Part shown: positions 25,420-58,630 of the stretch, in pieces | How the letters are laid out: each line of letters starts with the position of its first letter | Numbering within the stretch: position 1 is the first letter of the stretch | Assembly: GCA_002269645.1 (NCBI GenBank) | Contig: NIVC01002777.1 | Coordinates: 62,001-126,000, forward strand | DNA: 64,000 nt | Origin: Macrostomum lignano | Taxonomy: Eukaryota | Reading direction: 5' to 3' | Position numbers and translations under genes: made by a program | The notes under the pieces: generated by a model | What the model was told of the DNA's origin: nothing | Seen by the model: the letters and a program-made list of their open reading frames with translations, nothing else | The model's database searches: none

Positions 25420-25432
25420 TTAAGGACCATAT
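25420..25432 (-). CDS. ZAP-like copy A, putative micro terminal exon (R-Y-G-P-stop)
   Basis: TTTTTCCTTTCAG|A TAT GGT CCT TAA satisfies phase 2; inferred from splice signals only. Confidence 0.5.
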
Positions 25433-25582
25433 CTGAAAGGAAAAATAGGTGAACATTTTTTTAAAGTTGAAAGCAAGGTTTTGTTAGCAAAAAGCTGTGT
25501 TGGAGCTATTTGTCTGGTAAGCTCTATGAAATCGATGTAGCGCTAAGCTAGTGCAAGAATCAACAGGTGCAAAAAGACCAAC

Positions 25583-26563
25583 CTGGGCCCACTGGGAGGC
25601 GGAAATCTGCCACCCATAAACGGATCCGTATAAAACGAGGACGGGGGCCGTGGTCCGAAAAATGCAGGATGCACCGGCGGTCCCAGGCCTCGACCAGGGA
25701 TCGGTGGTGGATGCTGCTGGAAGCTCCATTGCTGCGGCTGCATCCGTGGCGCCGGCCTGCGACGTAGCGGCATCTCCTGCGGAGCTCCGGGCATGGAGAT
25801 GAGCATTGAGTCGAGCTTGCAGCCGCACTGCCCGACAGTCAAGCTGGAGTCGCCGCGGCAAAACGCTTCCTCGAGCTTGTCGTTGAGGCCGGGCTCTGGA
25901 AGAATCTCAACGGAGCTCCAGGCGCCGTGGCTGCCAAGGAAGAACCAGCGCCAGTTGGTGGCCAGGGGCCGGTGGAGGCTGGCGCGGCTCTCCGTGCGGA
26001 GGCAGCGAAGGCCGCCGGGAGGCTTGAGGTGTCCCGAGACCGACCGAATCTCGAATCTATCGGCCGAACCGGCAACGAACGACAGCGTCAGCTGACCGGG
26101 GAACTCGGAGCCGAGCTCGCCGCTGCCGACCGTCACTAAGTCGGAGCGGTCGGGCTGGCAGAAGGCCGCCTCCAGCTGCTCGTTCAGCGCGGCGTCCACG
26201 TCCTGCCAGCGGCTCGGCGGCCAGTGGGCGGCCCGCCACTGCCACAGATAAGGGACCTTGTGAGGGCAGTGCCGCCGAGGACAATTCTGGGAGAAGCATT
26301 CGTGCCGGAGGAACTCCTCGCACAGGGTTTCCTCGCTAGGAGCGGCACGAGACGCCTTTGGATTGGCGGCGGCTGAGGCAACGGGCGGCTTTTGCTGCGC
26401 TTTTGGGCTGCTGCAGAGTTTCAACTTTGCGATGTTTGGCACACTGCCTGCGGACAGCTTGTTTTGGCGCTTGCTTTGCAAGTCAGCCTTCTGCTGCTGT
26501 TCTGTCGATTGCTGATGACCTCGGAATTGGTGCTTGCCCGACTGGTGCAGCCCAATTGGCGGC
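25583..26563 (-). CDS. ZAP-like copy A, exon 6: CCCH finger plus tandem WWE domains
   Basis: ETLCEEFLRHECFSQNCPRRHCPHKVPYLWQW...WQDVD..LNEQLEAAFCQP resembles PARP12 finger-WWE1; NWRWFF...W...EDKLEEAF...LRRRP resembles WWE2; acceptor AAACAG|G, donor AG|GTTGGT. Confidence 0.85.
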
Positions 26564-26669
26564 CTGTTTGTACGAATGCCAGAGCGATCCAATTTAGTTC
26601 AAGTGCACATCGTTGAGAGAAAAGGGGTGGCGCCCCAGCCCCAACCAGGCCGATAAACATTTTCGGCCT

Positions 26670-26870
26670 CCCTCCTTACTGCTTTCTCATTGGCTGAGCT
26701 AGATTGGGCCTGTCCTCTAGGCTCTTTCCTTACTGCTCTCTCATTGGCTGAGCTAAATTGGCCCTGCCCACTAAGCTGAGTTTCGTTTGTCTAACTGTGA
26801 CCTCTCTCCTTACTGCTCTCTCATTGGCTGAGCTAGATTAGGCCTGCCCTCTAGGCTGAGTTTCGTCTGC
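26670..26870. repeat. Degenerate repeat (CTCCTTACTGCTCTCTCATTGGCTGAGCTAGATT) in the copy-A-specific intron
   Basis: Three imperfect copies. Confidence 0.75.
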
Positions 26871-27173
26871 CTTGGGTTCACTTGTGTAAATCGAATTAGT
26901 TGTCTGTTCATTCTTCACCCCCATATGCTCCCGAGGACGCAAACCCCGAGAAAAGAAATTTTAAATGCCACAATAAACTCTAATGACACTTCGCCCAGAC
27001 TAACTCATGTAAAAAGAGTATACGATCTACTTTTTCACAACAAAAATGTAGTGTCTGCCGTGTTAACTAATTAAGTCTTTCACAATTAGGGAGCCTTTAA
27101 AAAAGTTGTTTGAGTCGATCAGAGCGCCAAAACAAAAATGGCAGTTTGAAGGACTGGTAAAAAACAATCTTAC

Positions 27174-27643
27174 CTAGGACCATGTTGCGGCTGTGGCATA
27201 AGCGGCGCAACATTTGACGATTGCTGTGGAGCATTGCTTCTAGGAGGCTGATTAACGTTAGCAAAAGCAGCGGGTACTGGATTCGAATTGGTGTTGGGCA
27301 GCGGGGCGGGAATCAGGAAAGACCTGAGCACGTGACCAGGCTCCATCTTGTCCATGTCGAAGGGGAACAGCTTCATCTTGGTCTGCTCATCCATGCTCAG
27401 CACGTGCTGCCTGCGGCAGCGGCACTTGCCGCACTGCTTGAACTTGACGTTGTTGCACAGGTGAATGTCGGCACAGTCAGTTTGTTGACAGCCGGATTCT
27501 GAGTTGTAGGCTGAGCACACCTTCGGGTGGCTGGCCAGCAGCAGGTTGAGCACCTCCCGCTGTTTCAGGCCGTCTGCGATGCCCAAGGCGCTGCGAATTC
27601 GGTGGTTGCGGCCGCTGAGGTCGTGGCAGAGCCTGCAGTCCGC
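27174..27643 (-). CDS. ZAP-like copy A, exon 5: fingers 3-4 of last module
   Basis: CTCAG|ADCRLCHDLSGRNHR...HPKVCSAYN...HLCNNVKFKQCGKCRCRRQH; donor AG|GTAAGA in phase 2. Confidence 0.85.
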
Positions 27644-27684
27644 CTGAGCAATGCGGAAGGGCATTGGGGCATTTTTAATGAGGG

Positions 27685-27945: not shown

Positions 27946-28042
27946 TAATTAACAAGTTGCAGACTCAGTTGTGGGATGAGACTGATTGCAGGAAGGGGAT
28001 ATTGATCAAATCAAATTGCACAAGTCAAACGCATCTCCCCAC

Positions 28043-28822
28043 CTTATCATGCACTTTGCCGTCGGGGTCGGCCAGAAACCACAGGCACAGGTGCAGCTGG
28101 TAGCAGTCCGCATTCTGGCAGGACTTCGGTGCCCCGTTGTGCATCGGGCAGATGCGGAAGCGGCGAAACACATTCACGCTGACCGGCTGTCTGCTCACAG
28201 CATCCTTGTAGATGTCAATCATGCTCTGCAGCGGCTTCATCAACCCGTCGATGTTGTCCCGCCACTGCTCCAGCGGGAAGCCGCTCGGCAGTTTCAGGTC
28301 GGCCAGCAGCTCCGACGGTGCGGCTCGGCCGCTGCGGCGAATCAGCGCGGCGTAGGCGGGGCGAAGGCCGAGGCCGAGGGCCGACACGTCGGGCAGCGGG
28401 GGCGGCAGGCTCGGGGCGGGCGCAGGGGCGGGCGCAGGGGCGGGCGCAGGTGCGGGCGCAAGGGCGGGTCCGGGGACACCGGCCATGGCAGGCAGGGAGT
28501 TCCGCAGCGCAGCGGGTACCAGGAAGGATCTGGCGAGGAAGTTCAGGTTGCTGTCGTCCAGGCCGAACCTGGCCAGCTTGGCCGCCGTCTCCGGGTCCTT
28601 AGCGGCAGGCTCCAGGACGTGCCGCCTATGACACGGGCACAGCTGCTTAGCCAGCTTGTTTTCCCTGTGCAGCGCGTTGTTGCAAATGTGAATGTCGGGG
28701 CAGCGGGCATCGGAACACCCGCTGTCTGTGTTGTACTTGGCGCACACAGTCGGGTGGCTCGCACGCAGCAGCTCGAAGACCTTCTGGATGCCGACTGCGC
28801 CGAGGCCAATGCGGGCAAGCAG
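28043..28822 (-). CDS. ZAP-like copy A, exon 4: fingers 3-4, AP linker, then next HTH plus fingers 1-2
   Basis: CCGCAG|LLARIGL...HPTVCAKYN...CPDIHICNN...; ends DGKVHDK|GTGGGG; 780 nt, phase 0-0. Confidence 0.88.
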
Positions 28823-28844
28823 CTGCGGGCGAGTGAATGATTAG

Positions 28845-29915: not shown

Positions 29916-29928
29916 TACAGTTACAGAC

Positions 29929-30345
29929 CTCCTTATTGCGCGCATCCCCCAGTCCGTGAACCAGACCGCACTGTCCATTGTGCACCCTTCCATCTGGGTC
30001 GCCCAGCCACCACAGACAGAAGTGCAGCCGCTTGCACTTCGGATTCGTGCAGCTGTCCTTGGCGCCATTGTAGAACTGGCAAATTCGAACACAAGGATAA
30101 GCATTGAGCCGCCCCTCACACAGAATGAGCTTCCCGCCTGGCTGATCCGACAGCCACTGATCCAGTGGGAAATTTGATTCCAATGCGAATCTCTCCAGGA
30201 ATTCTGGCACCGTGGCGCTGCCGCCTGTAGTCAGCAGGAAGTTCAACACATTGTCCAGCGTCAGCAATGGCGCTGACTGAATGTGCCGAAACACATGGTC
30301 AAAGTTCAGAGCGTCCTTGTATAGGTCCTGCTTCTCTGGCCCAGC
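29929..30345 (-). CDS. ZAP-like copy A, exon 3: helical/HTH segment plus fingers 1-2 of an NTD module
   Basis: LTLDNVLNFLLTTGGSATVPEFL resembles ZAP FITKILCAHGGRMALDALL; RICQFYNG...CKRLHFCLWW; near-identical to 49819-50229. Confidence 0.88.
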
Positions 30346-30570: not shown

Positions 30571-30939
30571 AATGTTTTCCGGCAAACTCTGTGGCGGTCC
30601 TAAATCTTTCAGATATTCCGCCTCTTCAATGTCGATTCCATCTGCCTTTTGACCGTCGTCCTCTTCTGTAACATCGACCAACAAATCGTCATCGACAAAG
30701 TCGCCATACGAAGCAACGTCCGATTCGTCAGCGTTGTCGTCGTCCAAGTCGCCGACGCTCGACTGGTTGTCGCCGACGCTGGACGCGGCTGAGGTTAACG
30801 ACTCGGCTCGGCTGCTAATTCCAGCGTCGCCTGCGGCAGCTCCCTGCTGACTGCGACAGCGTCTGCAATGACAGGCGCGAGCTCTGCGCAGCTTGGCCTG
30901 GTCGTACGGGTCGCTCACCACAACGAATCGCCACGCCAC
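30571..30939 (-). CDS. ZAP-like copy A, exon 2: acidic linker
   Basis: CTGCAG|VAWRFVVV...DDDNADESD...LPENI|GTAAGG; 369 nt, phase 0-0, linking exons 1 and 3. Confidence 0.7.
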
Positions 30940-31466: not shown

Positions 31467-31937
31467 CTGCACATCCACCCAGTCGGCAGGGATATGAATA
31501 TTGCGCCGCGCAATAGCCTCTCGATCAAGCCGATGACTCAGTCGGCACTGCGCATCTCGTGGGCATTTCTTTCCTAGTGCAGTTGATGGACAGCAGTGCA
31601 AATTGGGACACTTGGCTGGTCCTAGACGACACTTTCCACGCCAATAGTGCGTGCAGGGTCGAACAAATGCTTGCCGAAGGATGTATCTGTGGCGCTGTGC
31701 CTCGCACTTTGGTGACAACTTTGGAAAATAGTGTTTCAATATATTCTCATTATGCATTGTCAGGGTTGAATGCGCCATTTTACAGTTGGACTCGGCTTTG
31801 CAATAGCCAGCCAGCCATCTTGAGCATATGTGGAGACTGCAGCACTGTTTATCCTTGCAAATTGCAGCATTCCTATACATTGAGCACAGTTGTAAATTTT
31901 TGGGAAAATGAGTGCCCTGTTGATGCTTAGGAGGCAT
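31467..31937 (-). CDS. ZAP/PARP12-like copy A, exon 1: divergent four-finger CCCH module
   Basis: ATG 31937; CSMYRNAAICKDKQCCSLHICSRWLAGYCKAESNCKMAH ... CTHYWRGKCRLGPAKCPNLHCC...CPRDAQCRLSH; donor CAG|GTCTGT in phase 0. Confidence 0.75.
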
Positions 31938-34564
31938 TGCTATGTAGATTGTTTATGTTTATAACATGAAACATAAAGCAGTATTTATTATAATGGTGTA
32001 AAAGGTTAAGTAGTATTTTGCAAATGTGTTATTTAATTTAATCAGGCCAATCAAAAGATTATTAAAAACAAAAATAAAAATGCATAGTTGAAAAAAAAAG
32101 TTCTTTGTTTAGTGTAGCATTTCATTTTGAATGTATAGAATACCACTGATTAAAATCATGAAAAATGACAAATTGAAATATGCTAAGAATATATAAGTAT
32201 AGCACTTAGCCAATAATTTAGCTAGGTAAAGAGGCTACTAGACAAGGTAAGTCATAAAGTTATTGTTTTATACATCCATATCTGTGATAGATTCCAGAAA
32301 ATATGGCTCAATTCTTTTTAAAAGACTTGAACAATTTGACTTTTTTCCCATTATGGTACACGTGTAAGGCTTCTGAACTAATCCCATCATTTCACAAGGC
32401 TACCAAGTTGTGATAGGGGTATAAGATGATCTTATTTCTGACCCAAAGTTGTTACAGTGGTCTACTACTCTTACTAGCCTACTTATATATCTTTTATGCA
32501 TAAGTAGAACTTATTAGCAGAGCATGTAGTATCTACTATAGCATTTGTACTACTTGTATTTACTGGCCTGAGTGGCTATATGGCACTGTCTATCCTATTC
32601 CTATGTTCTATGTACTCCTATGATTCTTCTTCCAATTTTAGGGTTCCTTGAAGGAATAAAAAGATGAATTTCAATTGAAAACTTTCTAAGTTATAAGTTA
32701 ATAACTGAAAGGCTCACTAATCACAAGCAAGGTTTTTGCTCTCTCAGTTTTTGGTCTTCTATTTATACTGGTTAAAAATCACTTTAAAACAAATTTACTT
32801 GTAGAATATTATTTGGAAACACTATAGTTGAACAAAATTGGGGCAGGAATTTAAATATAATTTCTAAGAAACTTTTCTAAGAAATTTTCCAAGGCAATTT
32901 TCTAAGAAACAGCAAATTAGAATTGTAGCAAAACAGTTTTATACTATAAAAAGAATATAAAGAACATATTATATTGCATTTACTGTGAAAAATGCACTAC
33001 TTCATTAGAAGAAATTGACAAAGAAAAAGGAGTTTGGAATTGATGTAAAAATACAAAAAGAAATGCTAGGACCCTCTTATCTTAACAAATAAGACTAGAA
33101 GTAATACATAAGATACATATACTAGGGCCTACTAAAACCACCTAGGCTAGAATACATTGCCAGAAATGCTACTAGAATGACCAAAACTGCTACCATAAAT
33201 GTAACTATTAATAAGAACTAGAAAAAGTAGCCATATTCTAGAAATATAATTTGCTAAACATGAATGCATACATTGAAGTATAGGCTTACCTAGACCTATG
33301 ACAGCTTTAATGGCATTAGTAAAATATTTATAAAAAAGGGAAAGCCCTAAGACAACTTGGTATTGGTGGCAGCAAGGATGCTAACCAATTTGGCAATAGA
33401 GATTCACTATGGATAAATTCAGCAAAGTATTTAAAGTATAAAGTAGTATAAACTATTTATCTAAGCATAAGTCTGAGTATTGGTCTAAAGATTATTCTGA
33501 GTATTAAATTCTCATAGGTAGCATTCTCACTGTTATTTTGGTAGCATTCTTACTGTTATTCTAGTAGCTTTCTTATTATTTTCTGGCCTAAGCAGTTTAG
33601 GGTCTACCTAGTATAAAATGGTTAGCATGGTTGTAACACTCGAGGACACTCGCACTGTCATAGCCTTCCAAAAATGACATTAAATGACACTTATCTCTAC
33701 TGTCACCAGCACGACACTGACATGCGACACTGCCCTACGACACTGGCCTGGACTGTTGCCAGCATGACACTGCCCTACGATACTAGCCTGGACTGTCACC
33801 AGCACGACACTGATATGCAACACTGCCCTATGACACTGGCCTGGACTGTCAGTGGCACGACACTGACATGCGACACTGCCCTATGACACTAGCCTAGACT
33901 ACTACCAGTATAACACTGACATACAACACTGCCCTAAGACACTCATCTAATACTCATCCAACACTCATTTGACACTTATCCGACATTCATCCAACACTTA
34001 TGACACTCATCAGACACTGCCTAACACTCATCCAACACTGCCCAATACTCATCCAACACTGCCCGACACTCATCTGACACTGCCGAAATTTATCCAACAT
34101 TGCCTGACACTCATCTGACACCCATCTGACACTCATAGTCTGAAGGAAAAGTCAACAACTAAAAGAAAGAATAAATCGGCTGATAACGATAAGGTCAGCA
34201 GTAAAAACACTGCCTACTGGATTGTCTATTTTCAAAATCCAAAATGGCAAGTGGCTTTGGTTAGCCACAGCCAGACCCAATTTTCAAACAGTTGTGGCAC
34301 CAAGGGTCAGCAGGAATACTCTGTGAGAGATGAAGTACGAGTTTGAGTAGCCAAAGGTGGTAACTCAAAGGCAGCCCTGCACGAAGCCACAATTTTAAGG
34401 GCCTATACTCCACTAAGGGAACAATCGGAAGTTGCCTTACAGTGCTATAGGCAATAGCCACTAGTACCAACCATCAACTTGGCAAGTAGGTGCACTTGTT
34501 ACCCCTCTTTGCAGCAAGACCTTTTGAGTTTGTGTGCCAAAATAGAGAAAAACATGCAGATGCA

Positions 34565-34861
34565 CATACATGCGCAACAGTCGGCCGAGTCGGCCGATCC
34601 GGCCGACCGATTTGGCGGCCAACCAAAGAAGTCGCAAAAATGCCCACCTAAAAGAACACTAAGTAGTAGTACTAAGTAGCTGACGAGGCATTTTGTTTTT
34701 ATAAGACAGTCATAGTTACTCCTGCCGTTTACCCATAGTTGCGTTAATTTTGCTTTCGGGTTTTTTTACATGTAAGTCGCATTTTTGGCCAATAACTACG
34801 TCGCATTTTTGTTAAAACTAAGTCGCACGGCCGACCGAATTTTGGAGGTTGCGCATATATG
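34565..34861 (+). mobile_element. hAT MITE, copy 1
   Basis: 14-bp TIR CATACATGCGCAAC; perfect 8-bp TSD CAGATGCA. Confidence 0.9.
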
Positions 34862-34869
34862 CAGATGCA

Positions 34870-35700
34870 TGACAAAAAGTGTCACACTAAACATAGTCTG
34901 ACTGCAAGCTACAAAGCTGAGCCGGAGAAGACTGCAGAGATCTTGCAATTGCAAAAACAACCTGAGAAGTTGCGCTTGTCGGCGGCCACCAACAGACAAA
35001 GCACAGAAAAGATACTAGACAAGTATAAATGGAGCATCGAGATGCTCAAGACTGAGTGTCGCATCCTAAAGAAGTATTCACTGATGCCGTACTGGACAAC
35101 TTGAAATCTAAATGTTGTCAAAGATAGCAAAAAAGTCATGGCTACAATCTCTCAGTCGCAGTCCAGAGATAACACTACTAGATTGCATGAGGCTACAAAA
35201 GTGCTGGAGAGTGCAGCAGTCTGCAGCATCATCCCAAATAGCAATAGTGCTGCAAATGATGTCATTGCTACAGAGCAGTGGTCTGTTTAAGTTGGCAAGG
35301 ATCTTCAACCAAGGCTTGGGTCAGTTATGCTAACCTGAATGCAGATGTCAAAATTCTAGCCAGTAGCCTTGCCACGGCAAAAGGAGCTTTTCTAGGCAAT
35401 TCCCAGAAAACAAACAAGAATGGAAAGAAGGGTCGACAGAAGTCTAATACCATAGCATTGGACAGAGGTCTGCAAGTTCTCTTCTAGGCATGTTTCACAC
35501 CCAAGGAAATGGCCAAAATGTCTTACCAAGGAAGAGCCATCAAAGACAGCACCAACAGACTAGCTGCCAATTAACATCAAAGAACAGCCATAGAATCTTA
35601 TCTAGATGCAATGGGACTGAGAAGCATTGGTCTACGCAGAATTCCATATCTGTACAGTCACATGTTGGAAGCTGTGAGAAAGAAGATGAACATTGGTGAC
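34870..35700 (+). pseudogene. Decayed ORF with BEN-domain-like C-terminal segment
   Basis: LDRGLQVLF*ACFTPKEMAKMSYQGRAIKDSTNRLAAN*HQRTAIESYL...MLEAVRKKMN fits the BEN pattern; several in-frame stops. Confidence 0.45.
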
Positions 35701-36027
35701 AACAATCAGTGATGGCGGCGAGAAGGCAGGTGATGGCGGCGATAAGGCATGTGATGGCAGCGATGAGGAAGATGACACTAGCAACAAGGCTGACATGGAA
35801 ACTTTATGAAGTTTTCTAAAATGCAGTGACAGTGTATTAAGTGACCTAAATGTCTATTTGTGACCCAACATCTTTTTGTAAGATACTTAGTGAATAAATC
35901 CACAATTTGCTTAATACATAGATTAAGCAACTTACTTCTTTGGATACAAAATTCATTTGCTACTTCTTGATTAGCTTTGCTACACGAGTTTCAGGCAGTG
36001 TTGGATGAGTGTTGGGCAATGTTGGAT

Positions 36028-36340
36028 CATACATGTGCAACAGTTGGTCGATCTGACTGACCGATTTGGCGGCCAACCAAGGAAGTCACAAAAATGCTAA
36101 CCCAAAAAATACCTAAGTTGTAGTACTAAGTAGCTGATGAAGCATTTTGACTTAATACGACAGTCATAGTTACTCTTGCCATTTACCTAAAGTTGTATTA
36201 ATTTTGCATTAGGGTTTTTTTTACATTTAAGTTGCATTTTCGGCCAAAAAATATGTCGCATTTTTGGCCAAAAACTATGTTGCATTTTTGTTAAAACTAA
36301 GTCGCATGGCTGACCAAATTTTGGAGGTTGTGCATGTATG
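36028..36340 (+). mobile_element. hAT MITE, copy 2
   Basis: TIR CATACATGTGCAAC; perfect 8-bp TSD TGTTGGAT. Confidence 0.88.
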
Positions 36341-37401
36341 TGTTGGATGAGTGTTGGATGAGTGTCAGGCAGTGTTGGATGAGTGTTAGACGAATGTGGG
36401 ATGAGATGAGTGTCAGATCAGTGTCAGACAAGTGTCGGATGAGTGTCAGATAAGTGTCGGGCAGTGTCAGATGAGTGTTGGGCAATATTGGATAAGCATT
36501 AGACGAGTATTGGAGGAGTGTCGGGCAGTGTAGGATGAGTATAGGATAAGTATCAGACAAGTGTCAGATGAGTGTCAGACAAGTGTTGGATGACTAGTAT
36601 CATTAGGTGGTGTCATTAGGCAGTGTCATTTTAGCCAAAAGTGGCAGTGCTAACAACTGTCATATTTTAAGTGTCAGTCATTATTGGTTTGTAAATTAGA
36701 AAGAAAGTTGTACCTTAAGTGTAAAGTAGCTTGGACACTAATTTTTAAAGAAAATATTCTTTAAAAATTATAAGAGTTTCACTAAACTTTAAAGTAACTG
36801 TCTTTGCTAAAAACTATTATTCTTTTTTTTACTTTTGTTTAAAATTTTCCAGCGTAAAAACAACCTTTTGGACTATGAAAAGTAGAACTTGAGTGCGCAT
36901 ACACTACATGGCATATAACCATGTTAAATGCATGTAAAAGTCAAATCCTGTCTCTGATTCTGCATTAAACAGCTTCTTTGCATACGCATACAATGGAGTG
37001 CGCACACACCTTCTTTAAGAGCACACAAGTAGGCTCCTTTTCAGTACACAAGTGCGCACAAATTTGATAAGCGCATACAAACGCATAACAACTTTTGTGC
37101 AAGAATTCCATCCTGGCAAAGTCTATAATAAGGTAGATTGTTTAATTGCTTTCAAGAAACATATTTTGAAATTTCAAGGTTTACTGATATTGTTTATACA
37201 ATAAAAATTATTAGCACAAAATATGACTAATATTTGTGTGTTCTTTGTAAGCTTATCTTATAAAGTATAGATTTAAAATTAAATGAGAATCCAATACTAA
37301 CTAGATAAGTAGGCTAGGCTAGCTAATAATAATTTTATTTTTAATATAACTAACCCAACTATTCATTAATCATTCAATGAAGTATTTCGAACTAATCTGA
37401 T

Positions 37402-37695
37402 CATACATGCGCAACCTCCAAAATTCGGTCGGCCATGCAACTTAGGCCTAGTTTTAACAAAAATGCAACATAGTTTTTGGCCAAAAATGCAACTTACATA
37501 TAAAAAAACCCTAATGCAAAATTAACGCAACTTTGGATAAACGGCAGGAGTAACTATGACTGTCTTATTAAGTCAAAATGCCTCATCAGCTACTTAGTAT
37601 TACTACTTTGGTATTTTTTAGGTAGGCATTTTTGCGACTTCCTTGGTTGGCCACCAAATTGGTCAGCCGGATTGGCCGACTGTTGCGCATGTATG
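37402..37695 (-). mobile_element. hAT MITE, copy 3 (inverted)
   Basis: TIR CATACATGCGCAAC; perfect 8-bp TSD AATCTGAT. Confidence 0.9.
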
Positions 37696-40504
37696 AATCT
37701 GATATAGGCCATGTTTAGGCACCTAGCATACCTTTATATAGAGGCCTAATTTATAATAATATGGTAAATGAAATTTTATTATACATTGATAGTCAAAGTG
37801 AACGAATTAAAACTTCAATGTCGATTTTCTAAGCATTCATTTAGATTTAAATTACTGAATTTTTAACCAATTGTGTAAAGCAGTTTGTCATTTGAATTGT
37901 TTTTTGGGGCAAGGTTTAACTTTAAGGGCCTGATTTTAGAGAAATTTGCTAGCCCAATGCCAGCCCTGCACTAGCCCACTCAAACAAAAATTAAAACGCC
38001 TGGGAAATGAAGCCAGTATGATTTAATGAGCTGAAATCTTTTGGGGCATAACTTTTGGACCATAGGCCCTAATCTATAAGATTTTATTAAAGCTGCATCT
38101 GGGGCATAATTTTAAAATTTTGACGCGGCTGAGACGCGGCTAGCGACATGGAGGTAGACAATACTGGGACAACAGACAACAGTAGAACATATGCCATACA
38201 TAAATATTACAAATGAAGATATTCAGTTGATGTTTTCAGCACTGAGGACTGAGGTCACTGAGGAGTTTGTTCAATTGCGCCAATAAAACAGTCGCACAGA
38301 AATTAAAATAGCTATAACGCACAGTTTGTATTCTTATGCCGTATCGGCTTGACATGCTCCATGTTTGCTCCCGCTTAAAAAATTGAAGCCGATTCCTGGT
38401 TAAAATCCTAGTTAAACTGAATATTCAGGGTTTATCTAGGAATGAGAATGATCGAGAGTTAAGATCGCGTCCAAGTTAAACTGACGTTTGAATTCTTTAC
38501 ACTTTAACAAAGCACGGTCAAAAAAGTTGAAAAATGACTGTTAAAGTAAGCTAACTGCAAATAAAGTTGTATTTAAAATATTAGACTGAGCTTCATTACA
38601 CACATATATGAAACACAGCATGAAAAGTAATAGATTTGAATGTTATCGCGCGCTCAGACGCATGTTAATTTAATTTTATTTTAGTTAATTTCAAAGCAAA
38701 ACGAAAAATATTTAAATTTGCAGATCGTCTCTGCACAGTTAAACAACATGCTATGCTGCGAGTATATTAAAACATCTTTGTTTGGAGTCAAACATTTATG
38801 GACTGACTTTTTGTGAAAAGTCAGTTTTGTGAAAAAACTTTGTCTATTTTGTGAAAAAATAAGTAAGTTTACAAAAGCATGGCGTAAAAGTGCAGTAGCA
38901 CAAACGTTTCATTTTTCGGATCTAAAAAAGCAAGGAATTCATTCTTTTATTTTCTTAATTTTAACTGCTTAAACCGGAGTCGTACAGAAAGTGGCAATTA
39001 CTCTACGCTGTAAAACTGCATCTATACATACGGACGAGGGGTTCAAAAAGTTTTGTCGTTCGCCTTTTTTGAGCAGAAATTTGATAAAATTGTTTTTTAA
39101 CATAGCCTACCTTCTGCCGATCAATTAATGCACTTAAAAATCGGTCGCAGCGCCTGATGTCACCGGTGTACATGTGTACGTGTAGAAATCTGCCGGTTGA
39201 TTCTCCAGCCACTGGTTGGCGAGGGTTTAAGGGGTTATAGAGACCTACTACTCTTCGTTAGACTCGAAATGGGGTCATGGGTGGAGCGGCCGCTTGTATC
39301 TGTACATATATATGTAATTTAAGTTGACAGAGCAGCATGTATAAAAATAGGAGGGTGCCAGATCTGATAAGAATTGGCTGGATGACGGAGAGGATCGAGG
39401 ATTCACATAGTGGTTGAGCTGGGGGCATTTTGTCGTGAAGTAGCAGGGTGCCAGCAATCCCCTTTCCACTCTTCCTGGACAACTGCAGCCTGACAAGCCG
39501 CGGCCCAACAAAACGCAGCCCGGTGCAAAGTCCTCGTTTCCAGAACTGACTATAGACTGTGTACGTCCTTGCATGCCTCTCGCATATACAGCTAAATCGG
39601 CCATTTCTAGTACAGTTAATAAAAATTCGTTTGCAGACTGATGGAGTCCCTTCTCGTTAGTGCATGGGAGTCTCCCGCGGGGGTACTCCTGTACAGGTGA
39701 CTGAGTGAGATGACCTTTAAGCATGTACCTTTAAGCAACCCAGTCCGCTGTCTAGATAATGGGATCTTGGCCGCAACGTCAGCTACCGCACCATGCAGGA
39801 GGCAGCTACAGTCAAGGGGACGAGGCCTGGCGGCTGACATTTCAGTGCCTGGAGCCCAGGGGTTGCACAGGTGTACGTTCTCATGCAGCCTGAATTTACG
39901 TCATCAAATAATTGCAGTAGTATATTTTTTAGTCTTTATATTCTCCATTTACATGTAACGCTTCTCCGTCCAAAAAACGATCTGACGGATACTGTATCAG
40001 AGTTTGCTCTTGCATGTGTTGCCCCCCTCCTCAAACTTTAATAATTTTCTTCTTCCGCCACGCCTGCAGTTGTGGAGTACACAGACTTTATCACTATTCG
40101 ATGCTGTTGGCTATTTTAAAGTATATAATATATATTAACGAGTGTTCAGTACATTGTATTTCTACCATTTTGTAAAGAAATCCAGAAGTGCTTGAAATTT
40201 TTGCAAAAAGATTCATAGTTACGATCAGCGTAAATTACATTATAGAGACATGAAAAGATTTGATCAGACACTTCCCTAATATTCCTTACAAAATGTACAA
40301 AAAATGAGTATACAATTAAAAGAATTCATGAATTCAACAGGCACATATTCTTTCTAAGACGGAACATAAGACTAGAGAACCATCTGCATCTCAATAGAAC
40401 AGCGCTCTCCAGGCATTTAATATCTATACACATAATTTAACGATCAACGATGTTATATTTATATACATTTTGGTTAGATGTACAATAAATCAGCTCGATG
40501 GATT

Positions 40505-45287: not shown

Positions 45288-47992
45288 GGGTGTGTATAAA
45301 AGCTGGCACTGGCACATTGGACACATTGGACACCCCTTTTTATAACAAAATTAGATATGAAAATGCAAAATAAACTTGCAGAGCTACTTTTAAAAAATTA
45401 AAAAAAATGATAATAATAGAAATGACATCCTTGCTTTTGTGATAGATGATTTGTTAAATATTCTTTGTATTATCGTTTTTTGTACATGTTTAATTTGGCA
45501 TTCGATTTTTTAAAATAATCGCACATGCAAAAACTGTACAGCTTGCAATGCTATTACTCTGTGATTTTACTACCCCGAAGGTTCTGTACTACAGGCGTAC
45601 CGATTTAATGCTAAATATGCCTGATATATGAAATGATCAAACTAATAGTCAGAACTCAATTCTCCATAAAATGATGAAGCATTCTGCTCTTATCAAAAAA
45701 CCACAACTTATTTTGTTAGGATTACTTCATGAAGAACGAACTTTGGATATTCCAAATTGCAAGTATTTCTATATTAAAAAAGTTAATACATTGGCAGATT
45801 ATTTGATGAAAAAATTGCACCCAAAAAGTTTTTTTTACTTTGAAAGATGATGAAAATATTAATAATTTCCAAGCTTCTTCTTTTATTAGTTCAATTACTT
45901 TTTGTATGATTTCAACCAACAAAAAAGGAATAGTTACTCAAGAAATTGTGCTAATCATTTAAATTATGAGTTAAAAAATGCAAGCATATAAGTAAAAAAT
46001 CTACCCTACAGACCAAGAAGTCTTTTTACTGAAAAGTTATATGTGACGCTTTGAATAAACAACATATAAACCATCTTCACATAACATTAATTGTCATTTA
46101 TTTCAGACCTAAATCCTTTAGCACATTAAATATTCTGCACGTATGTTGCAGGGTATACTTCCTTCTTCTAAAATCCTACAAATGACACAAAGTTTTAATA
46201 GGCAAATTTATTAGTATTGTTTATATTAATATTTCTATGTTTATGAGAAGTTTTCCAATAAGAACAAGTTCCCAATCATTAAAACACGATTTTTTAATTC
46301 TAATGTCTAAAATTATGGTGTTCTAAGGGACCAAGTGATAGGTTTTAAGCTACTATTAGCACCTGCATGATTTATTTATTTAATACCTACACATTCCTTA
46401 ATATCTATAGTTCGCCTAATTGCCTAATTGCTAACCCTAATTCTAGCCTTCTTGGCTTACAAGTTTGAGTCTTCACAGCATATTATTCAATTCAAGCCCT
46501 ACTAATTTTATTAGCCTCTCTTAATTTTATAAAATAATAATTTTCTTTAGTGTAACTGCTCCAAAAATTTAAATTTTAATTTAAGTAGTGTGCCGAAACA
46601 CCACTTGCACCATTACAGCCCTGTCTATAATTTTTTTGTGCTAATTGGTTGACCACTTTCAATAATTTTCTTGGGTCAAGAGTGTGATATCTGCATATCG
46701 CAGCATGAATTTTTTAAAGAATCCCTAATTTTATACAAGGAATCATATATATTTATAGAAAGTTAGCTCTTAGAGTAGAGATAAAGTACATAAGACTATT
46801 AAAAGCAACTTTTCATACAATTGCTTATGGTAATGATTTCTATTGTTATAAAGTTACAAATAAATAAAAAGTTACATTGCATTTAAACTGTACTTTATGA
46901 GTTGTAAGCCTTTCAACTCAGAGTGCACTTCAATTGCTTTAATATACATTGCTAGATGTTATTTAGCATTTCTTTGTTATTTATCATTTAACTCATTGCA
47001 TTGTTTAATTGCTAATTTCATTTGCTCAGCTGCAATATTTATTACTTTTTTATTAATGCCAATGTTTGTTATACTTTTTCTCCCAATTTTTAGTGTTTGT
47101 GGTATTCTTTTGTCAAATTTTAATTTTTCAGCTGTATCTATCTTTACAAAAAATTGTACCTGTAAACTTATGGTTTTTTGCTTACAATGGTACTGTACTA
47201 AATTATATTTTATTTCCTTGTTAGATTCTCTAAATTGAAAAAGTAATGCACTGCTTTATTATCATGCATATTGAATATTAAGGATAGTTAGTATTCCTTC
47301 CTTGAAAAAGATTCTAGAGTTTGATTCTTTTTGATAAGAGAATAAATAATTTATTGAGTTTAAATGTTTTTAAAACATTAATTAATTGCATTTTGATGGA
47401 AATCATAACTTAAAAAATTATTCGTTTTTTTATTTAAGACACGGGGGATTTCAAAAGTCCATATTAACAACAAATCAAACATTAAAATTATGGGAGAGAG
47501 AGAGAGAGAGAAGTATTAGATTCACTTTCACCATTGCTGTTGATTTATGGAAAGGCAGTAAACAAGCCAGAGCAGCTGCAAATTGTCAAATATGCCATGT
47601 CCGGCTATAAAATTCTGCAACTAGTCTGCTGCTCACTTTTTCCAACGTTTATTGAGGACAAGAAACGGCATTTAATGTTTCTATGTTTTCTGTAAGTGCA
47701 CAAACTAGGTAAATGAAAATGACGTACCGAAAGTAGTTCGACAATAAAGCAAGATAAGAAATGAATTTAAATGTAGTATAAAACTTGTTGATACTACCAA
47801 TCTCATGGTTGTTAGAAGTATATGAAAAAGTGCAATTATAAATAAATATTTACATTTTCATTCGAAAGCCAAAGTATATTTATTCAAGCAAAACAACGAC
47901 CAAAACTCGATTTTTGTTAACATAAGGGGTGTCCAATGTGCCAATGGTGCCCTGCTTTTATACATACCCGTGCCCTGCTTTTATACAGACCC
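45288..47992. mobile_element. MULE-like element, unit 2 of the dimer
   Basis: Near-identical to unit 1 with an internal deletion of about 90 bp; right end GCTTTTATACA(T/G)ACCC is duplicated, followed by 9-bp TSD TAATATTAA. Confidence 0.8.
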
Positions 47993-49209
47993 TAATATTA
48001 AAAGTAACAAAGCAGTAAAATTAACTAACAAAGTAGTCTTAATTACCACGAGGTAGTAGAAAATTCTCTTTTTGTATTGCAAGTTTATAAATTAATTATA
48101 ATATGTGGGGCATTGTGTAATTAAAATTAAAAGTCCTCAAAAATGAATTCGCCGAAACATTGCAATACTTTGCCAAAACATTACTTCACCGAAAAATTAC
48201 TTTGCCGAAATGTTGCGTAGCCCTTGGGATATATTTATCAGGGAAATCTCTAGAATGAAATGTTTAGTGCCCTACAGGCCTACACATGGTCAGAAACTTT
48301 AGAAAGTTTGCAAAGGTTTAGTACAAGGTCACTGTAGGTCTTACAAAATGACACAATTGATTTTTACCGAAATTGTACCGATTAGAAAGTTTGGCTTGCA
48401 TGTAGGTAGGCCTATTGTAGTATATAAAATGAATAGAATTACTTATCTACTTACTTTATTTATTGCTCAATGCTAAAAATATTTACCAATTACCATTTGA
48501 TTAAATAATCTAAGTGAAGGTCTTATTTCAGTGACATTAATAGGCCTAGGCTGGCTTAGCCCTAATTTAATTTGATTTATGATTACATCATAATAGTGCC
48601 CAGTAAATCAATAATTTTATTTTATAGGCCAGAGAAAGAATACATGTTATAGGCCTACTACAAGGAAATATTGCATATTATAATCATATATATAGCTAGG
48701 GCTAGGGTAGGCCTAGATATTAGGGGGAAGCTAAAAGGGCCATTCCCCCACTTCTTAGGTCTAGCCATTGCCAAAAAAATTTGAGCCATATTTTTATGAT
48801 CTATAACTTTGCAAGGTCTATTTTCCAACATAGGGTTGTAATTGTTTAATATAGCTTGCCCCTTTAAAAAAATTCTAGATCTAGGCCTATCTTTATGTTT
48901 TATGCACAATTGGTAAACTAAACCCTAATATTAAAAATCTAACAAGAGAAGAAAGGAGGATATATATACATTTATATTTAAAGCTGAGTGGATTGGCCAG
49001 GTTTATTACATATATATATATGAAGCCAACTCTTCTATTGAAGGAAAAAAACTCACATTGCTAAAAGTCTATTCCCTAAAATCCCATGACCTAAATCCCA
49101 TTTTCCAAATCCTCTCCAACTTGTCTATAGACCCAGCTTAAAAACTCTCAAGTACCATATCTTGTTTTTTCTATTTGAAAAAATTGACCAGTTGCTATCA
49201 TCTAGATTG

Positions 49210-49548
49210 ACTCTTTCTCTCTCCTCTTTCCTCTCTCCTTTCTTATTTCTAAACTTTCCTTTCCTCTTTGCTCTTATCTCTTATCTCATATTTACTCTCT
49301 TATCTATTATCTTTCTTTTCTCTTCTTTCTTTTTTCCTTTTTCATCTTGCTTCTCTTTTTCCTCTTTTCTTTTCCCTTTTCTTGCTTCTCTCTTTCTTCT
49401 TCTCTTATCTCCTATCTCTCCTCTCTCCTCTCTGTGCTCTTATTTCTATTCTTTTTTACTTTGTCTATACTTTCTGTTCTCTACTTTCTTATCTCTCTTC
49501 TCATTTCTCTTATCTTTTCTCTCATTTCTCATCTCTATCTCTATCTTG
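49210..49548. repeat. Pyrimidine-rich low-complexity tract upstream of copy B
   Basis: Direct reading. Confidence 0.85.
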
Positions 49549-49818
49549 TAATCCTATTTTAGGCATAAAGTATGTCTTAAAAATCATTAATGGCACTTTT
49601 TGAAAACATTTTGTGCCAAATGGCTTTGCATGAGGTCATTGCCAATAAAAAGTTAGGTGCTCACTATCCATAGAGTCTAAAAAAATTCGAATGTTCTTGC
49701 AAATCTTCAGATTTTATGGAAATGGTTCATAGGTTTGGAATATCTATATTCTATACATTTCTATACCATATTTTTGTACACAAAAATCTGTATAATTTCT
49801 AACCATATTTCTTAACTG

Positions 49819-50229
49819 ATGGAGAAGCAGGAGCCATACAAGGACGCTCTGAACTTTGACCATGTGTTTCGGCACATTCAGTCAGCGCCATTGCTGACGC
49901 TGGACAATGTGTTGAACTTCCTGCTGACTACAGGCGGCAGCGCCACGGTGCCAGAATTCCTGGAGAGATTCGCATTGGCATCAAATTTCCCACTGGATCA
50001 GTGGCTGTCGGATCAGCCAGGCGGGAAGCTCATTCTGTGTGAGGGGCGGCTCAATGCTTATCCTTGTGTTCGAATTTGCCAGTTCTACAATGGCGCCAAG
50101 GACAGCTGCACGAATCCGAAGTGCAAGCGGCTGCACTTCTGTCTGTGGTGGCTGGGCGACCCAGATGGAAGGGTGCACAATGGACAGTGCGGTCTGGTTC
50201 ACGGACTGGGAGATGCGCGCAATAAGGAG
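49819..50229 (+). CDS. ZAP/PARP12-like copy B, exon 1 (HTH plus fingers 1-2 of module 1)
   Basis: ATG GAG AAG CAG preceded by an in-frame TAA; near-identical to copy A exon 3; donor GAG|GTCTGT. Confidence 0.85.
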
Positions 50230-51420: not shown

Positions 51421-51433
51421 CACCCGCCCGCAG

Positions 51434-52201
51434 CTGCTTGCCCGCATTGGCCTCGGCGCAGTCGGCAGCCAGAAGGTCCTCGAGCTGCTGCGTGCGAGCC
51501 ATCCAGCTGTGTGCGCCAAGTACAACACAGACAGCGGGTGTTCCGATGCCCGCTGCCCCGACATTCACATTTGCAACAACGCGCTGCACAGGGAAAACAA
51601 GCTGGCTAAGCAGCTGTGCCCCTGCCACAGGCGGCACGTCCTGGAGCCCGCCGCCAAGGACCCGGAGACGGCGGCCAAGCTGGCCAGGTTCGGCCTGGAC
51701 GACAGCAACCTGAACTTCCTCGCCAGATCCTTCCTGGTACCCGCTGCGCTGCGAAACTCCCTGCCTACCATGGCCGGTGTCCCCGGACCCGCCCCTGCGC
51801 CCGCCCCTGCGCCCGAACCTGAGCCCACCCCGAGCCTGCCGCCCCCGCTGCCGGACGTGTCGGCCCTCGGCCTCGGCCTTCGCCCCGCCTACGCCGCGCT
51901 GATTCGCCGCAGCGGCCGAGCCGCACTGTCGGAGCTGCTGGCCGACCTGAAACTGCCGAGCGACTTCCCGCTGGAGCAGTGGCGGGACAGCATCGACGAG
52001 TTGATGAAGCCGCTGCAGAGCATGATTGACATCTACAAGGATGCTGTGAGCAGACAGCCGGTCAGCGTGAATGTGTTTCGCCGCTTCCGCATCTGCCCGA
52101 TGCACAACGGGGCACCGAAGTCCTGCCAGAATGCGGACTGCTGCCAGCTGCACCTGTGCCTGTGGTTTCTGGCCGACCCCGACGGCAAAGTGCATGATAA
52201 G
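51434..52201 (+). CDS. ZAP-like copy B, exon 2 (fingers 3-4 of module 1; HTH plus fingers 1-2 of module 2)
   Basis: CCGCAG|LLARIGL...DGKVHDK|GTGGGT; 768 nt, phase 0-0. Confidence 0.88.
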
Positions 52202-53514: not shown

Positions 53515-54393
53515 GCAAAATGCCAGCTATGTCACGACCTATTCGGTCGGAACCATCGGATTCGACAGGCGCTGGGCATTGGTGTGAAGTACAAACAGGC
53601 CGATATTATTAGCCTGCTACGTGCATGTCATCCGAATGTCTGCTTAGACTACAACACTGAGCCGGGCTGCAGCCGACCCAGCTGTCCCTACATCCACGTG
53701 TGCAACAACGCTCTACGCTCCGGCCTGCAGGCTAGCATGGACAAGGCTAATAAAAAGCAGACACAGATCACTTGCGCCTGTCTTAGGCAGCACAAACTGG
53801 AGCAGGACAGCGTGGCAAAGCTGCAGGCCTACGGGCTGGCTGACGAGAAGCTCAGTCTTGTGTTTCGCTCCTATCTGGTGCCGGCTGCGCTACCGAGACG
53901 CGCTAAGGTCGATCCGCCAGCTAAGCCAGCTAAATTCGATAAGGCCAAGGCTAAAGAGGCCACAGAATCCAAACAGAAGGCTGCTAAAGCTGAGGAGAAA
54001 CCAACTGCTAAAAAAGCCGCCCCGAGCCTGCCGCCCCCGCTGCCGGACGTGTCGGCCCTCGGCCTCGGCCTTCGCCCCGCCTACGCCGCGCTGATTCGCC
54101 GCAGCGGCCGAGCCGCACCGTCGGAGCTGCTGGCCGACCTGAAACTGCCGAGCGACTTCCCGCTGGAGCAGTGGCGGGACAGCATCGACGAGTTGATGAA
54201 GCCGCTGCAGAGCATGATTGACATCTACAAGGATGCTGTGAGCGGACAGGCGGTCAGCGTGAATGTGTTTCGCCGCTTCCGCATCTGTCCGATGCACAAC
54301 GGGGCACCGAGGTCCTGCCAGAATGCGGACTGCTGCCAGCTGCACCTGTGCCTGTGGTTTCTGGCCGACCCCGACGGCAAAGTGCATGATAAG
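53515..54393 (+). CDS. ZAP-like copy B, exon 3 (fingers 3-4 of module 2; HTH plus fingers 1-2 of module 3), absent from copy A
   Basis: CTATTAG|AKCQLCHDLFGRNHRIRQALGIG...HPNVCLDYN...CPYIHVCNN...DGKVHDK|GTGGGA; 879 nt, phase 0-0. Confidence 0.87.
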
Positions 54394-55472: not shown

Positions 55473-55518
55473 AAAGTCCCTCATTAAAAATGCCCCAATG
55501 CCCTTCCGCATTCCTCAG

Positions 55519-57062
55519 GCGGACTGCAGGCTCTGCCACGACCTCAGCGGCCGCAACCACCGAATTCGCAGCGCCTTGGGCATCGCAGACGGCCTGAAAC
55601 AGCGGGAGGTGCTCAACCTGCTGCTAGCCAGCCACCCGAAGGTGTGCTCAGCCTACAACTCAGAATCCGGCTGTCAACAAACTGACTGTGCCGACATTCA
55701 CCTGTGCAACAACGTCAAGTTCAAGCAGTGCGGCAAGTGCCGCTGCCGCAGGCAGCACGTGCTGAGCATGGATGAGCAGACCAAGATGAAGCTGAACCCC
55801 TTCGACATGGACAAGATGGAGCCTGGTCACGTGCTCAGGTCTTTCTTGATTCCCGCCCCGCTGCCCAACACCAACCCAAACGAAAAACCCGAGCCTCCAG
55901 CCGTGGCCTCTCAGCAAGAGTTATCGAAACCAAAGGATTTGGCCCCTTCCGAGCAGGCCAAGGGCAAAAAGGCCAAGCCAGAAGTGCCCAGCCTATTAAA
56001 TATTAATGCCGCTCAAGGCGTCGGCTTAAAGCCGCAACTGCAGGAGCAGCAGCATCAGAAAAAGAAAAAGCAGAAGACTCCTTCTGTTGCTTCCGATTTA
56101 TCCAGTGAACCTGACACTGCTGGGCTAAAAAAACAACAACAGCGGCAGCAGAAGGCTGACTTGCAAAGCAAGCGCCAAAGCAAGCTGTCCGCAGGCAGTG
56201 TGCCAAACATTGCAAAGTTGAAACTCGGCAGCAGCCCAAAAGCTCAGCAAAAGCCGCCCGTTGCCTCAGCCGCCGCCAATCCAAAGGCGCCTCGTGCCGC
56301 TCCTAGCGAGGAAACCCTGTGCGAGGAGTTCCTCCGGCACGAATGCTTCTCCCAGAATTGTCCTCGGCGGCACTGCCCTCACAAGGTCCCTTATCTGTGG
56401 CAGTGGCGGGCCGCCCACTGGCCGCCGGGCCGCTGGCAGGACGTGGACGCCGCGCTGAACGAGCAGCTGGAGGCGGCCTTCTGCCAGCCCGACCGCTCCG
56501 ACTTAGTGACGGTCGGCAGCGGCGAGCTCGGCTCCGAGTTCCCCGGTCAGCTGACGCTGTCGTTCGTTGCCGGTTCGGCCGATAGATTCGAGATTCGGTC
56601 GGTCTCGGGACACCTGAAGCCTCCCGGCGGCCTCCGCTGCCTCCGCACGGAGAGCCGCGCCAGCCTCCACCGGCCCCTGGCCACCAACTGGCGCTGGTTC
56701 TTCCTTGGCAGCCACGGCGCCTGGAGCTCCGTTGAGATTCTTCCAGAGCCCGGCCTCAACGAAAAGCTCGAGGAAGCGTTTTGCCGCGGCGACTCCAGCT
56801 TGACTGTCGGGCAGTGCGGCTGCAAGCTCGACTCAATGCTCATCTCCATGCCCGGAGCTCCGCAGGAGATGCCGCTACGTCGCAGGCCGGCGCCACGGAT
56901 GCAACCGGTGACCCATCCGCTCATGTCGGTGCAACAACCGGGTCTGTTCTATCCAGGCCAGAACCCTGTCATGGGCATCGGCCAGCCGTCCATGTATCCC
57001 ACTATGCCAACCTACGGCTACTCGATGGGTCAGATGAGTGGCCAGCAGGGCCCGGTGCATAG
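55519..57062 (+). CDS. ZAP-like copy B, exon 4 (fingers 3-4 of module 3, K/P/Q linker, CCCH-WWE-WWE, Pro/Met-rich tail)
   Basis: CCTCAG|ADCRLCHD...; same finger-WWE-WWE as copy A exon 6; donor AG|GTGAGC in phase 2. Confidence 0.88.
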
Positions 57063-57479
57063 GTGAGCTCGTTTCCATGGAGTTAAACATCCAGTAGCTT
57101 GTGCTATTTTTTTTGTCGATATACTTTACCTTTAGGCTACATGCTATTTTCATATGATTCTTCATTTAACAATGGAAACCATTGAGTTTTGCATTGTTTC
57201 CGCTATGTACAGAGCCGACCTACATGGAGTGCCACTATACCAATTCAGGTATTTCAGCAGGCACATTAACTTCATTTCTTATTTAGAGGTTTTTTGGATC
57301 CTTTTTTCCTTCATTCAATTTTGTGACTGAAACTGGGCATATGCGCCCCCCGTTGGGGAGGAAACAAACAAATTGAATAATCTGCATGTAGATTTTCAAC
57401 TTGCAGTCACTTTTACTTTATTGAGGAAAATGGTGTTTAAAGTAAAAAAGCATCCCCACCCTGACAGCCAGCTGTCTAG

Positions 57480-58430
57480 CCTAAGATATCAGCATCCCCT
57501 ATGAGCTTTGGCTCAGACTCTCTGAGCAACTCCTCACAGCCACAGCATTTCAGAAATTATCTCATGATGCGTCACATCTTAGCAATTCCCTCCATAAGCC
57601 ACTGTCTTTCAGCAATACCACCCATGAGTCTTGAAAACTCGCCAATTCCCCCATGAGCCTTGACAACTCGCCAATTCCTCCATGAGCATTGACAACTCAG
57701 CCATTCCCCCCATGAGCCTTGACAACTCAGCTTCCCCCCCCCTCATGAGCCTTGACAACTCAGCCATTCCCCCATGAGCATTGACAACTCAGCCATTCCC
57801 CCATGAGCCTTGACAACTCAGCCATTCCCCCATGAGCCTTGACAACTCAGCCATTCCCCCCATGAGCCTTGACAACTCAGCTTCCCCCCCCCCCCCAAGA
57901 GCCTTGACAACTCAGCCATTCCCCCATGAGCCTTGACAACTCAGCCATTCCCCCCATGAGCCTTGACAACTCAGCCATTCCCCATGAGCCTTGACAACTC
58001 AGCTTCCCCCCCCCATGAGCATTGACAACTCAGCCATTCCCCCCATGAGCCTTGACAACTCAGCCATTCCCCCATGAGCCTTGACAACTCAGCTTCCCCC
58101 CCCCATGAGCATTGACAACTCAGCCATTCCCCCCATGAGCCTTGACAACTCAGCTTCCCCCCCCCCAAGAGCCTTGACAACTCAGCCATTCCCCCAAGAG
58201 CCTTGACAACTCAGCCATTTCCCCATGAGCCTTGACAGCTCAGCCATTCCCCCCAAGAGCCTTGACAACTCAGCCATTTCCCCATGAGCCTTGACAGCTC
58301 AGCCATTCCCCCCATGAGCCTTGATAAATCAGCCATTCCCCCATGAGCCTTGATAAATCAGCCATTCCCCCCATGAGCCTTGATAAATCAGCCATTCCCC
58401 CATGAGCCTTGACATCTTAGTGATTCCCCC
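57480..58430 (+). repeat. Conserved head plus about 28-bp minisatellite (CATGAGCCTTGACAACTCAGCCATTCCCC)n
   Basis: Direct reading; same family as 24660-24960. Confidence 0.9.
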
Positions 58431-58614
58431 ACGAGTCTTCTATGATTGACAGGACAATTCTTTTTGGCTGAACCCTACCTTGACCTCATGAGCCACAGCA
58501 ATTCAGCACTTTACCCCGTGTGCCTTTTTCTTTTTTTCTAGTATCTCACCAATTTTTTTAACATTAGTTTTTTATTAAAAACTATGTGACAATATTGAAA
58601 TTCAATCATTTCAG

Positions 58615-58630
58615 ACCTGGCGGACTTTAA
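58615..58630 (+). CDS. ZAP-like copy B, putative micro terminal exon (R-P-G-G-L-stop)
   Basis: CATTTCAG|A CCT GGC GGA CTT TAA fits phase 2, parallel to copy A; splice signals only. Confidence 0.45.

Follow-up and report, generated by a model that had tools for sequence, protein, structure and literature searches.

A 64-kb stretch of the Macrostomum lignano genome (the window, meaning the whole stretch of DNA that was analysed) carries two head-to-head paralogous genes, gene A (25543-31937, minus strand) and gene B (49819-57066, plus strand), which lie 17.9 kb apart. We consider it fairly probable, at about 0.6, that these are ordinary host genes, recent paralogues within the ZAP/PARP12 family, whose products would be multivalent RNA-binding proteins without a PARP catalytic domain. 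The last exon of gene B is 100% identical to UniRef entry A0A1I8GJV3, and every near UniRef match to the window comes from M. lignano. An earlier inspection of the letters and open reading frames (hereafter, the sequence-only reading) had proposed an inverted pair of ZAP-like genes in this region; the pair indeed sits where it was placed, and self-comparison bears out its inverted paralogy.

Gene B is modelled with four exons encoding 1201 amino acids and gene A with six exons encoding 1175 amino acids, essentially the same models as those proposed earlier, for which lengths of 1205 and 1166 amino acids, respectively, had been given (Table 1). All ten modelled exon junctions have a GT donor and an AG acceptor and are consistent in phase. 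Database models P0003 and P0004 join the first exon of gene A to those that follow it, and the gene B model, P0001, leaves out the middle module. The structure of gene B, including a module that gene A lacks, recurs in an independent assembly contig, NIVC01000815.1 (locus L001); the gene A model was not found by exact look-up in other assemblies.

In both products, three modules precede a CCCH-WWE-WWE unit, in agreement with the sequence-only reading. A hidden Markov model (HMM) of the module recovers three full-length copies in gene B (amino acids 2-246, 271-522, and 564-804) and two in gene A (285-528 and 557-797), the latter preceded by a copy consisting of fingers only (14-146; module X). 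Five of the six modules thus have the helix-turn-helix (HTH)-like lead-in that had been described, module X being the exception. Direct searches gave only weak evidence: gene B exon 4 matched the mouse and rat ZAP N-terminal domains (NTDs) in the PDB weakly (phmmer, E=0.03), a profile of three window modules found no PDB match, Pfam searches of single-exon open reading frames (ORFs) returned a weak WWE match and zf-CCCH_PARP12 for module X only, and word-indexed homologue searches gave only M. lignano entries or five fragments. The sole phmmer match of exon 3, to a chromoprotein, was discarded as chance. An exhaustive HMMER search with the module profile across 1.84 billion representatives, on which our survey of the family rests, uncovered 347 relatives, of which 90 reached E<=1e-10. 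The profile built from 27 modules (3 from the window and 24 from relatives) matched the ZAP NTDs in the PDB with E-values of 1.3e-31 (6l1w), 5.6e-30 (3u9g), and 1.5e-28 (6uei), its positions 22-225 aligning end to end with ZAP residues 11-217, i.e., across the lead-in and all four fingers. The link between the Macrostomum modules and ZAP is therefore transitive, with relatives that match at E=1e-20 to 1e-54 as the intermediates. Pfam zf-CCCH_PARP12 matches 25 of the 27 modules in the family profile.

Structure prediction points in the same direction. The AlphaFold (AF2) model of module B3 computed from the family alignment had a predicted local distance difference test score (pLDDT) of 83.1 and a predicted template modelling score (pTM) of 0.77; from a three-sequence alignment, the model was unusable (pLDDT 43). 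At E<=0.001, Foldseek retrieved from the PDB only human ZAP with and without RNA, namely 6uej_A (7e-7 over 230 columns) and 6uei, and the lead-in of module B3 taken alone resembled winged-helix domains. The modules thus align as ZAP NTDs and the one modelled has their fold, as the sequence-only reading had anticipated, and the assignment of the two genes to the ZAP/PARP12 family is secure.

The C-terminal unit also matches solved structures. A profile of the window sequences and 12 relatives (A3) aligns end to end with ZnF5-WWE1-WWE2 of ZAP at E=2.7e-40 (7kzh and 7tgq) and 8.4e-38 (7sz2 and 7sz3), confirming that both genes encode a CCCH-WWE-WWE unit; Pfam WWE, applied to the window exon alone, scored 22-24 bits, barely over its cut-off. 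Downstream of this unit, the tails of gene A (25543-25735, minus strand) and gene B (56907-57066, plus strand) are unrelated to each other, since the duplication extends only slightly past WWE2. The hydrophobic LVFLHLLILALA that closes the gene A tail may serve as a tail anchor or simply result from read-through.

Each frame terminates behind its Pro-rich or low-complexity tail, as was noted earlier, and the claim that the genes lack PARP holds for this locus. An HMM built from the catalytic domains of the fetched relatives and run with filters off found no PARP exon among all 2559 six-frame fragments of the window, the best match having E=0.32 and 8 bits, and the PARP-containing homologues gave no tblastn match from their PARP parts among the matches listed, which were not filtered by PARP coordinates. 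The spacer between the genes has neither a copy of module X nor a PARP match on either strand. It might be argued that the genes are ordinary PARP12 orthologues with a PARP exon that is too diverged or lies outside the window, given that only 6.9 kb of sequence is available downstream of gene B, that UniRef calls the gene A model P0004 'Poly [ADP-ribose] polymerase 12', and that PARP domains occur in at least 20 of the 148 representative relatives. We regard this as very improbable: besides the stops after unrelated tails and the end of the duplicated segment just past WWE2, the next called gene in NIVC01000815.1 begins ~590 bp after gene B on the opposite strand, HMG-box and TEAD genes and no PARP match occur in the 25 kb downstream of gene A, and the UniRef name of P0004 derives from a zinc-finger Pfam match only.

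From this architecture, each product would be a cytoplasmic, multivalent, single-stranded-RNA-binding protein. The diverged modules (39-50% identical) would bind RNA with avidity, perhaps with differing preferences for short motifs. Such a protein would act without catalysis of its own, and probably also without canonical reading of poly(ADP-ribose) (PAR); it would work by recruiting partners or sequestering RNA, as is thought for the PARP-less ZAP-S and ZC3HAV1L, and recognition is unlikely to be CpG-based. Our leading guess for its role is action against viral or retroelement RNA. That the pair serves as an antiviral RNA sensor, as the sequence-only reading proposed, we infer from family precedent only.

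The points that weigh against this reading concern the RNA- and PAR-binding residues, the end of gene A, the constraint on the pair, and the frequency of similar arrays among relatives. The structural match of module B3 to ZAP is moderate by TM-score (0.42-0.46, root-mean-square deviation ~11 A). The description of the modules as four-fingered stands by homology only. Fingers 1, 3, and 4 have invariant Cys3His ligands; finger 2 of the five HTH modules lacks its second Cys, with Val at the position of ZAP C96 and a His next to it, within a conserved DPDG(K/R)VH motif. The zinc site of this finger may be altered in these modules, whereas module X retains the Cys. The residues through which ZAP contacts CpG are K89, Y98, K107, and Y108 (PMC8102003). 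K89 is replaced by Leu in the HTH modules and by Ser in module X, K107 by Gly, Gln, or Arg in the HTH modules (Lys is present in module X), and Y108 by Leu or, in module X, Met; the position of Y98 lies in an unaligned insert. CpG-based recognition is unlikely because these contacts are absent. In the C-terminal unit, the equivalent of ZAP W611 is Phe in the window genes, a conservative change, while that of Q668, a buried Gln, is Ile in both (MLISM versus MIQTN in ZAP, at the same spacing to RRRP), although Gln is kept at this position in 9 of the 12 relatives. Both residues belong to the PAR pocket of ZAP, in which Q668A or Q668R abolishes PAR binding (PMC8853533). Canonical PAR reading is thus probably absent, since the pocket Gln is Ile. 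Furthermore, human PARP12, the nearer paralogue type for the invertebrate members, has no detectable RNA binding (PMC8102003). With the CpG contacts and the Q668 equivalent changed, the earlier label of a ZAP-S-like sensor is weakened.

These changes lend weight to the view that the two proteins are general post-transcriptional regulators, e.g., in mRNA decay, stress granules, or germline RNA control, that have no special role in defence and resemble ZAP through shared ancestry only; we take this to be a serious possibility, though short of probable. Consistent with it, the ZAP-specific CpG pocket is unconserved and the PAR pocket altered, CpG-specific antiviral activity is a late trait that appeared in tetrapods (PMC8102003), and the neighbours are ordinary developmental genes (TEAD and HMG-box). 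The exons of the gene pair are also not CpG-poor, with an observed-to-expected CpG ratio of 0.87, and filtering by CpG would therefore be of no use for telling self from non-self in this animal. On the other side, vertebrate ZAP, PARP12, and PARP7 all act as viral restriction factors, and in cnidarians the immune signal cGAMP induces homologues of the family more strongly than most other genes (PMC11784840); recent duplication with turnover of modules and linkers is typical of defence genes, though not specific to them.

The end of gene A bears on whether both products share the same architecture. The frame of exon 5 runs into a TAA (27172-27170), and gene A gets its WWE exon only when the putative intron 27173-26564 is spliced (donor TCCTAG/GTAAGATT, acceptor ACAAACAG/G), which restores the WWE-exon frame. 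Gene A may be truncated ahead of the WWE unit, and its product may be NTD-only, full-length, or both. If translation ended at the TAA, gene A would encode an NTD-only protein like human ZC3HAV1L, and the CCCH-WWE-WWE exon would be a stranded remnant or serve a minor isoform, an outcome that we consider possible but do not favour. The genomic sequence does contain the in-frame stop, database models P0004 (783 amino acids) and P0003 (817 amino acids) terminate there without WWE, and the interval 26497-27288 of gene A, which has no DNA alignment between the two genes, holds unrelated repeat-bearing sequence in place of the B-type linker. P0003 (UniRef A0A1I8H8H3) is a model of a third M. lignano paralogue at another locus, in which the A-type terminal peptide (PLPNTNSNPVPAAF...HGPR) comes behind the B-type linker, so that the same terminus exists behind a different linker. 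From this arrangement, the A-specific segment seems to have arisen by insertion, with gene A later losing the sequence between two PLPNTN repeats. Against truncation, the stop overlaps a strong, near-consensus donor (AG/GTAAGA) for which a frame-restoring acceptor exists, and the WWE exon of gene A keeps an open frame of 352 codons, 98.7% identical to gene B and with zero stops; yet at a synonymous divergence (dS) of ~0.03, the copies are too recent for decay to show. An alternative donor at the point where A and B diverge, after 'RMQP', was rejected on manual reading, as gene B has only a weak CCA/GTGACC and gene A has no GT there.

Segment 25735-30336 of gene A matches 56907-49822 of gene B in inverted orientation at 89-99% identity, and the two copies differ in module and linker content, which upholds the earlier picture of duplicated genes with remodelled linkers. 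The notion that the modules were freshly tripled does not survive, as their duplication is old: the two types of first half share 39-41% identity and the three types of second half 45-50%, near-identity (94-97%) being confined to the copies of the beta first half. The extra module of gene B combines an old, divergent gamma second half, for which self-comparison found no DNA counterpart in gene A, with a recently homogenised beta first half. On a simple reading of these halves, module number would shift by unequal recombination between beta copies. The modelled exons of both copies have zero stops and zero frameshifts. Coding divergence between A and B is low (dS 0.01-0.06), with a pooled dN/dS of ~0.4; with ~42 substitutions behind it, this ratio argues only weakly for constraint.

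Such low divergence, in a recently duplicated genome with many near-identical paralogues, also fits the idea that the inverted pair is an artefact of collapsed or chimeric haplotypes or homeologues in the assembly and that the locus has one gene only. L001 (NIVC01000815.1:351395-374914) aligns to window positions 42063-60251 with 99.4-99.8% identity up to 53066 and ~94.6% from 53055 on, a switch within gene B that points to a haplotype or homeologue mosaic, or to gene conversion, and gene A, as said above, had no exact counterpart in an independent assembly. We nonetheless find an artefact improbable. The copies differ in structure, gene A alone having module X, the acidic exon, and the replaced linker, and gene B alone having the gamma module and a start codon of its own; 17.9 kb of unique, AT-rich DNA lies between them, and each has its own UniRef entry.

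The reading of the pair as multivalent PARP-less family members also has to be set against the wider family. Among 148 representative clusters, at least two modules were found in 64 and at least three in 28, and some clusters have at least five, P0006, P0008, P0011, and P0012 having five to seven. Named cases with multiple NTDs include coral, snail, and nemertean proteins, which match the module profile at E=1e-20 to 1e-29: Montipora foliosa 'ZC3HAV1-like' (zinc finger CCCH-type antiviral protein 1-like; XP_068694759, P0028) has three modules followed by WWE and PARP, Pomacea canaliculata 'PARP12-like' (XP_025082025, P0022) has two modules, and Tubulanus polymorphus LOC141908132 (P0047) has three. 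Invertebrate PARP12/ZAP-like members, some of them PARP-less, have moreover been noted already (PMC8102003). Judging from these matches, a tripled RNA-binding head is ordinary in invertebrate members of the family and is no new kind of system. The novelty that the sequence-only reading saw in the arrays is thus only half preserved: homologues with multiple NTDs are common, and we found no explicit description of them in the literature. One survey mentions 'additional zinc-finger domains', not arrays (PMC11784840), and the other demanded five CCCH fingers, so that multi-module forms were excluded (PMC8102003); neither covers flatworm members. The literature yielded nothing relevant on the locus tag or on Macrostomum together with PARP12.

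Given that arrays occur in cnidarians, molluscs, nemerteans, and flatworms, one could go further and see in diverged ZAP-type NTD arrays (2 to at least 5) a widespread, undescribed class of invertebrate multivalent RNA readers, in which each module would have its own short-motif preference and the array, not CpG, would provide discrimination of non-self, the Macrostomum pair being uncoupled from ADP-ribosylation. We think this unlikely. The finding on its own does not reveal a new defence mechanism. What it does is to extend the ZAP/PARP12 family to free-living flatworms, to correct the gene models of two M. lignano loci that are fragmented in current annotation, and to indicate that loss of the catalytic domain and multiplication of the RNA-binding head are ordinary invertebrate variation, which the main evolutionary surveys left untreated, their filters having required the five-finger architecture of vertebrates. 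Macrostomum is a model for regeneration and germline biology, and the pair is a candidate for studies of RNA surveillance in this animal.

Compared with known systems, the two genes come closest to ZAP (ZC3HAV1, PARP13) in its ZAP-S form, with which they share an NTD of HTH and four CCCH fingers, ZnF5-WWE1-WWE2, and a product without PARP. Unlike ZAP-S, however, they have three NTDs in place of one, and the CpG contacts, the finger-2 Cys (in five modules), and Q668 are changed; in addition, ZAP-S loses PARP through alternative processing of a PARP-containing gene, whereas the Macrostomum locus has no PARP exon. PARP12 and the invertebrate PARP12/ZAP-like proteins (PMC8102003; PMC11784840) belong to the same family and have the same domain order, but the Macrostomum genes lack the catalytic domain. 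The multi-NTD relatives share with them two to three tandem NTDs (elsewhere at least five) ahead of ZnF5-WWE; they differ in that the Macrostomum modules carry the DPDG(K/R)VH insertion in finger 2, and the Montipora protein further differs in keeping the PARP catalytic domain, which is absent here. Human ZC3HAV1L ('ZAP-like', NTD only) would be the nearest parallel if gene A stopped at the TAA, its product then being NTD-only without WWE and PARP, although with three NTD modules and not one.

Table 1. Features of the gene pair in the 64-kb window (position 1 is the first nucleotide of the window).
Feature	Position	Strand	Content and support
Gene A exon 1	31467..31937	-	Start codon and module X (four CCCH fingers without HTH lead-in); GT donor after ...ADWVDVQ; Pfam zf-CCCH_PARP12 E=4e-6; module HMM covers profile positions 84-219 only
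Gene A exon 2	30571..30939	-	Acidic low-complexity linker; open frame, AG acceptor and GT donor in phase; in P0003 and P0004
Gene A exon 3	29929..30345	-	First half of module 2 (HTH lead-in and fingers 1-2; type alpha); 97% identity to gene B exon 1; module HMM
Gene A exon 4	28043..28822	-	Second half of module 2 (fingers 3-4), Pro/Ala linker, first half of module 3 (type beta)
Gene A exon 5	27174..27643	-	Second half of module 3 (type delta) and A-specific linker
Gene A putative intron 5	26564..27173	-	Holds ~60-bp tandem repeats
Gene A exon 6	25543..26563	-	Linker, ZnF5-WWE1-WWE2 (~25750-26343), Pro-rich tail ending in hydrophobic LVFLHLLILALA, stop; 98.7% identity to gene B over 25735-26497; Pfam WWE E=5e-5
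Gene B exon 1	49819..50229	+	ATG, first half of module 1 (HTH and fingers 1-2; type alpha); also in locus L001 of the independent assembly
Gene B exon 2	51434..52201	+	Second half of module 1, Pro/Ala linker, first half of module 2 (type beta)
Gene B exon 3	53515..54393	+	Second half of module 2 (divergent type gamma), Lys/Ala-rich linker, first half of module 3 (beta); frame open between AG acceptor and GT donor; additional module that gene A lacks, present in L001
Gene B exon 4	55519..57066	+	Second half of module 3 (delta), long basic linker, ZnF5-WWE1-WWE2 (~56299-56892), Q/G/M/P-rich tail, stop 57064-57066
AT-rich spacer	31938..49818		~17.9 kb between the divergent genes; GC content 0.29-0.43

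Two further genes lie on the plus strand of the window, both with minisatellite-rich introns: a TEAD-type factor at 1208-5652, in which a TEA domain (E=1.5e-14) is accompanied by a YAP-binding domain, and, at 11555-14279, an HMG-box protein that includes long Gln-rich stretches. A viral or mobile element was considered for the region and set aside, nothing of the kind being seen and the neighbours being the two genes just named. Within intron 1 of gene A, positions 31314-31383 (minus strand) match the Rfam tRNA model at 37.8 bits, above its gathering score, and ARAGORN calls no tRNA there; the match may represent a tRNA-derived repeat or a degenerate tRNA gene.

Minisatellites in the introns of the pair vary strongly between the paralogues. 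A 15-bp unit is present in 65 copies in gene B (54492-55473) and 17.5 in gene A (27689-27943), and copy number likewise differs between the arrays at 28833-29204 (gene A) and 51093-51424 (gene B). Long ORFs that run through such arrays, e.g., 54467-55597, were dismissed as spurious. Downstream of gene B, large tandem arrays occupy 57609-58430, 59487-60250, 61894-62456, and 63096-63888, with units of 29, 52, 23, and 31 bp, respectively, and the 52-bp array reaches more than 8 kb in NIVC01000815.1, where it falls within a called gene on the minus strand.

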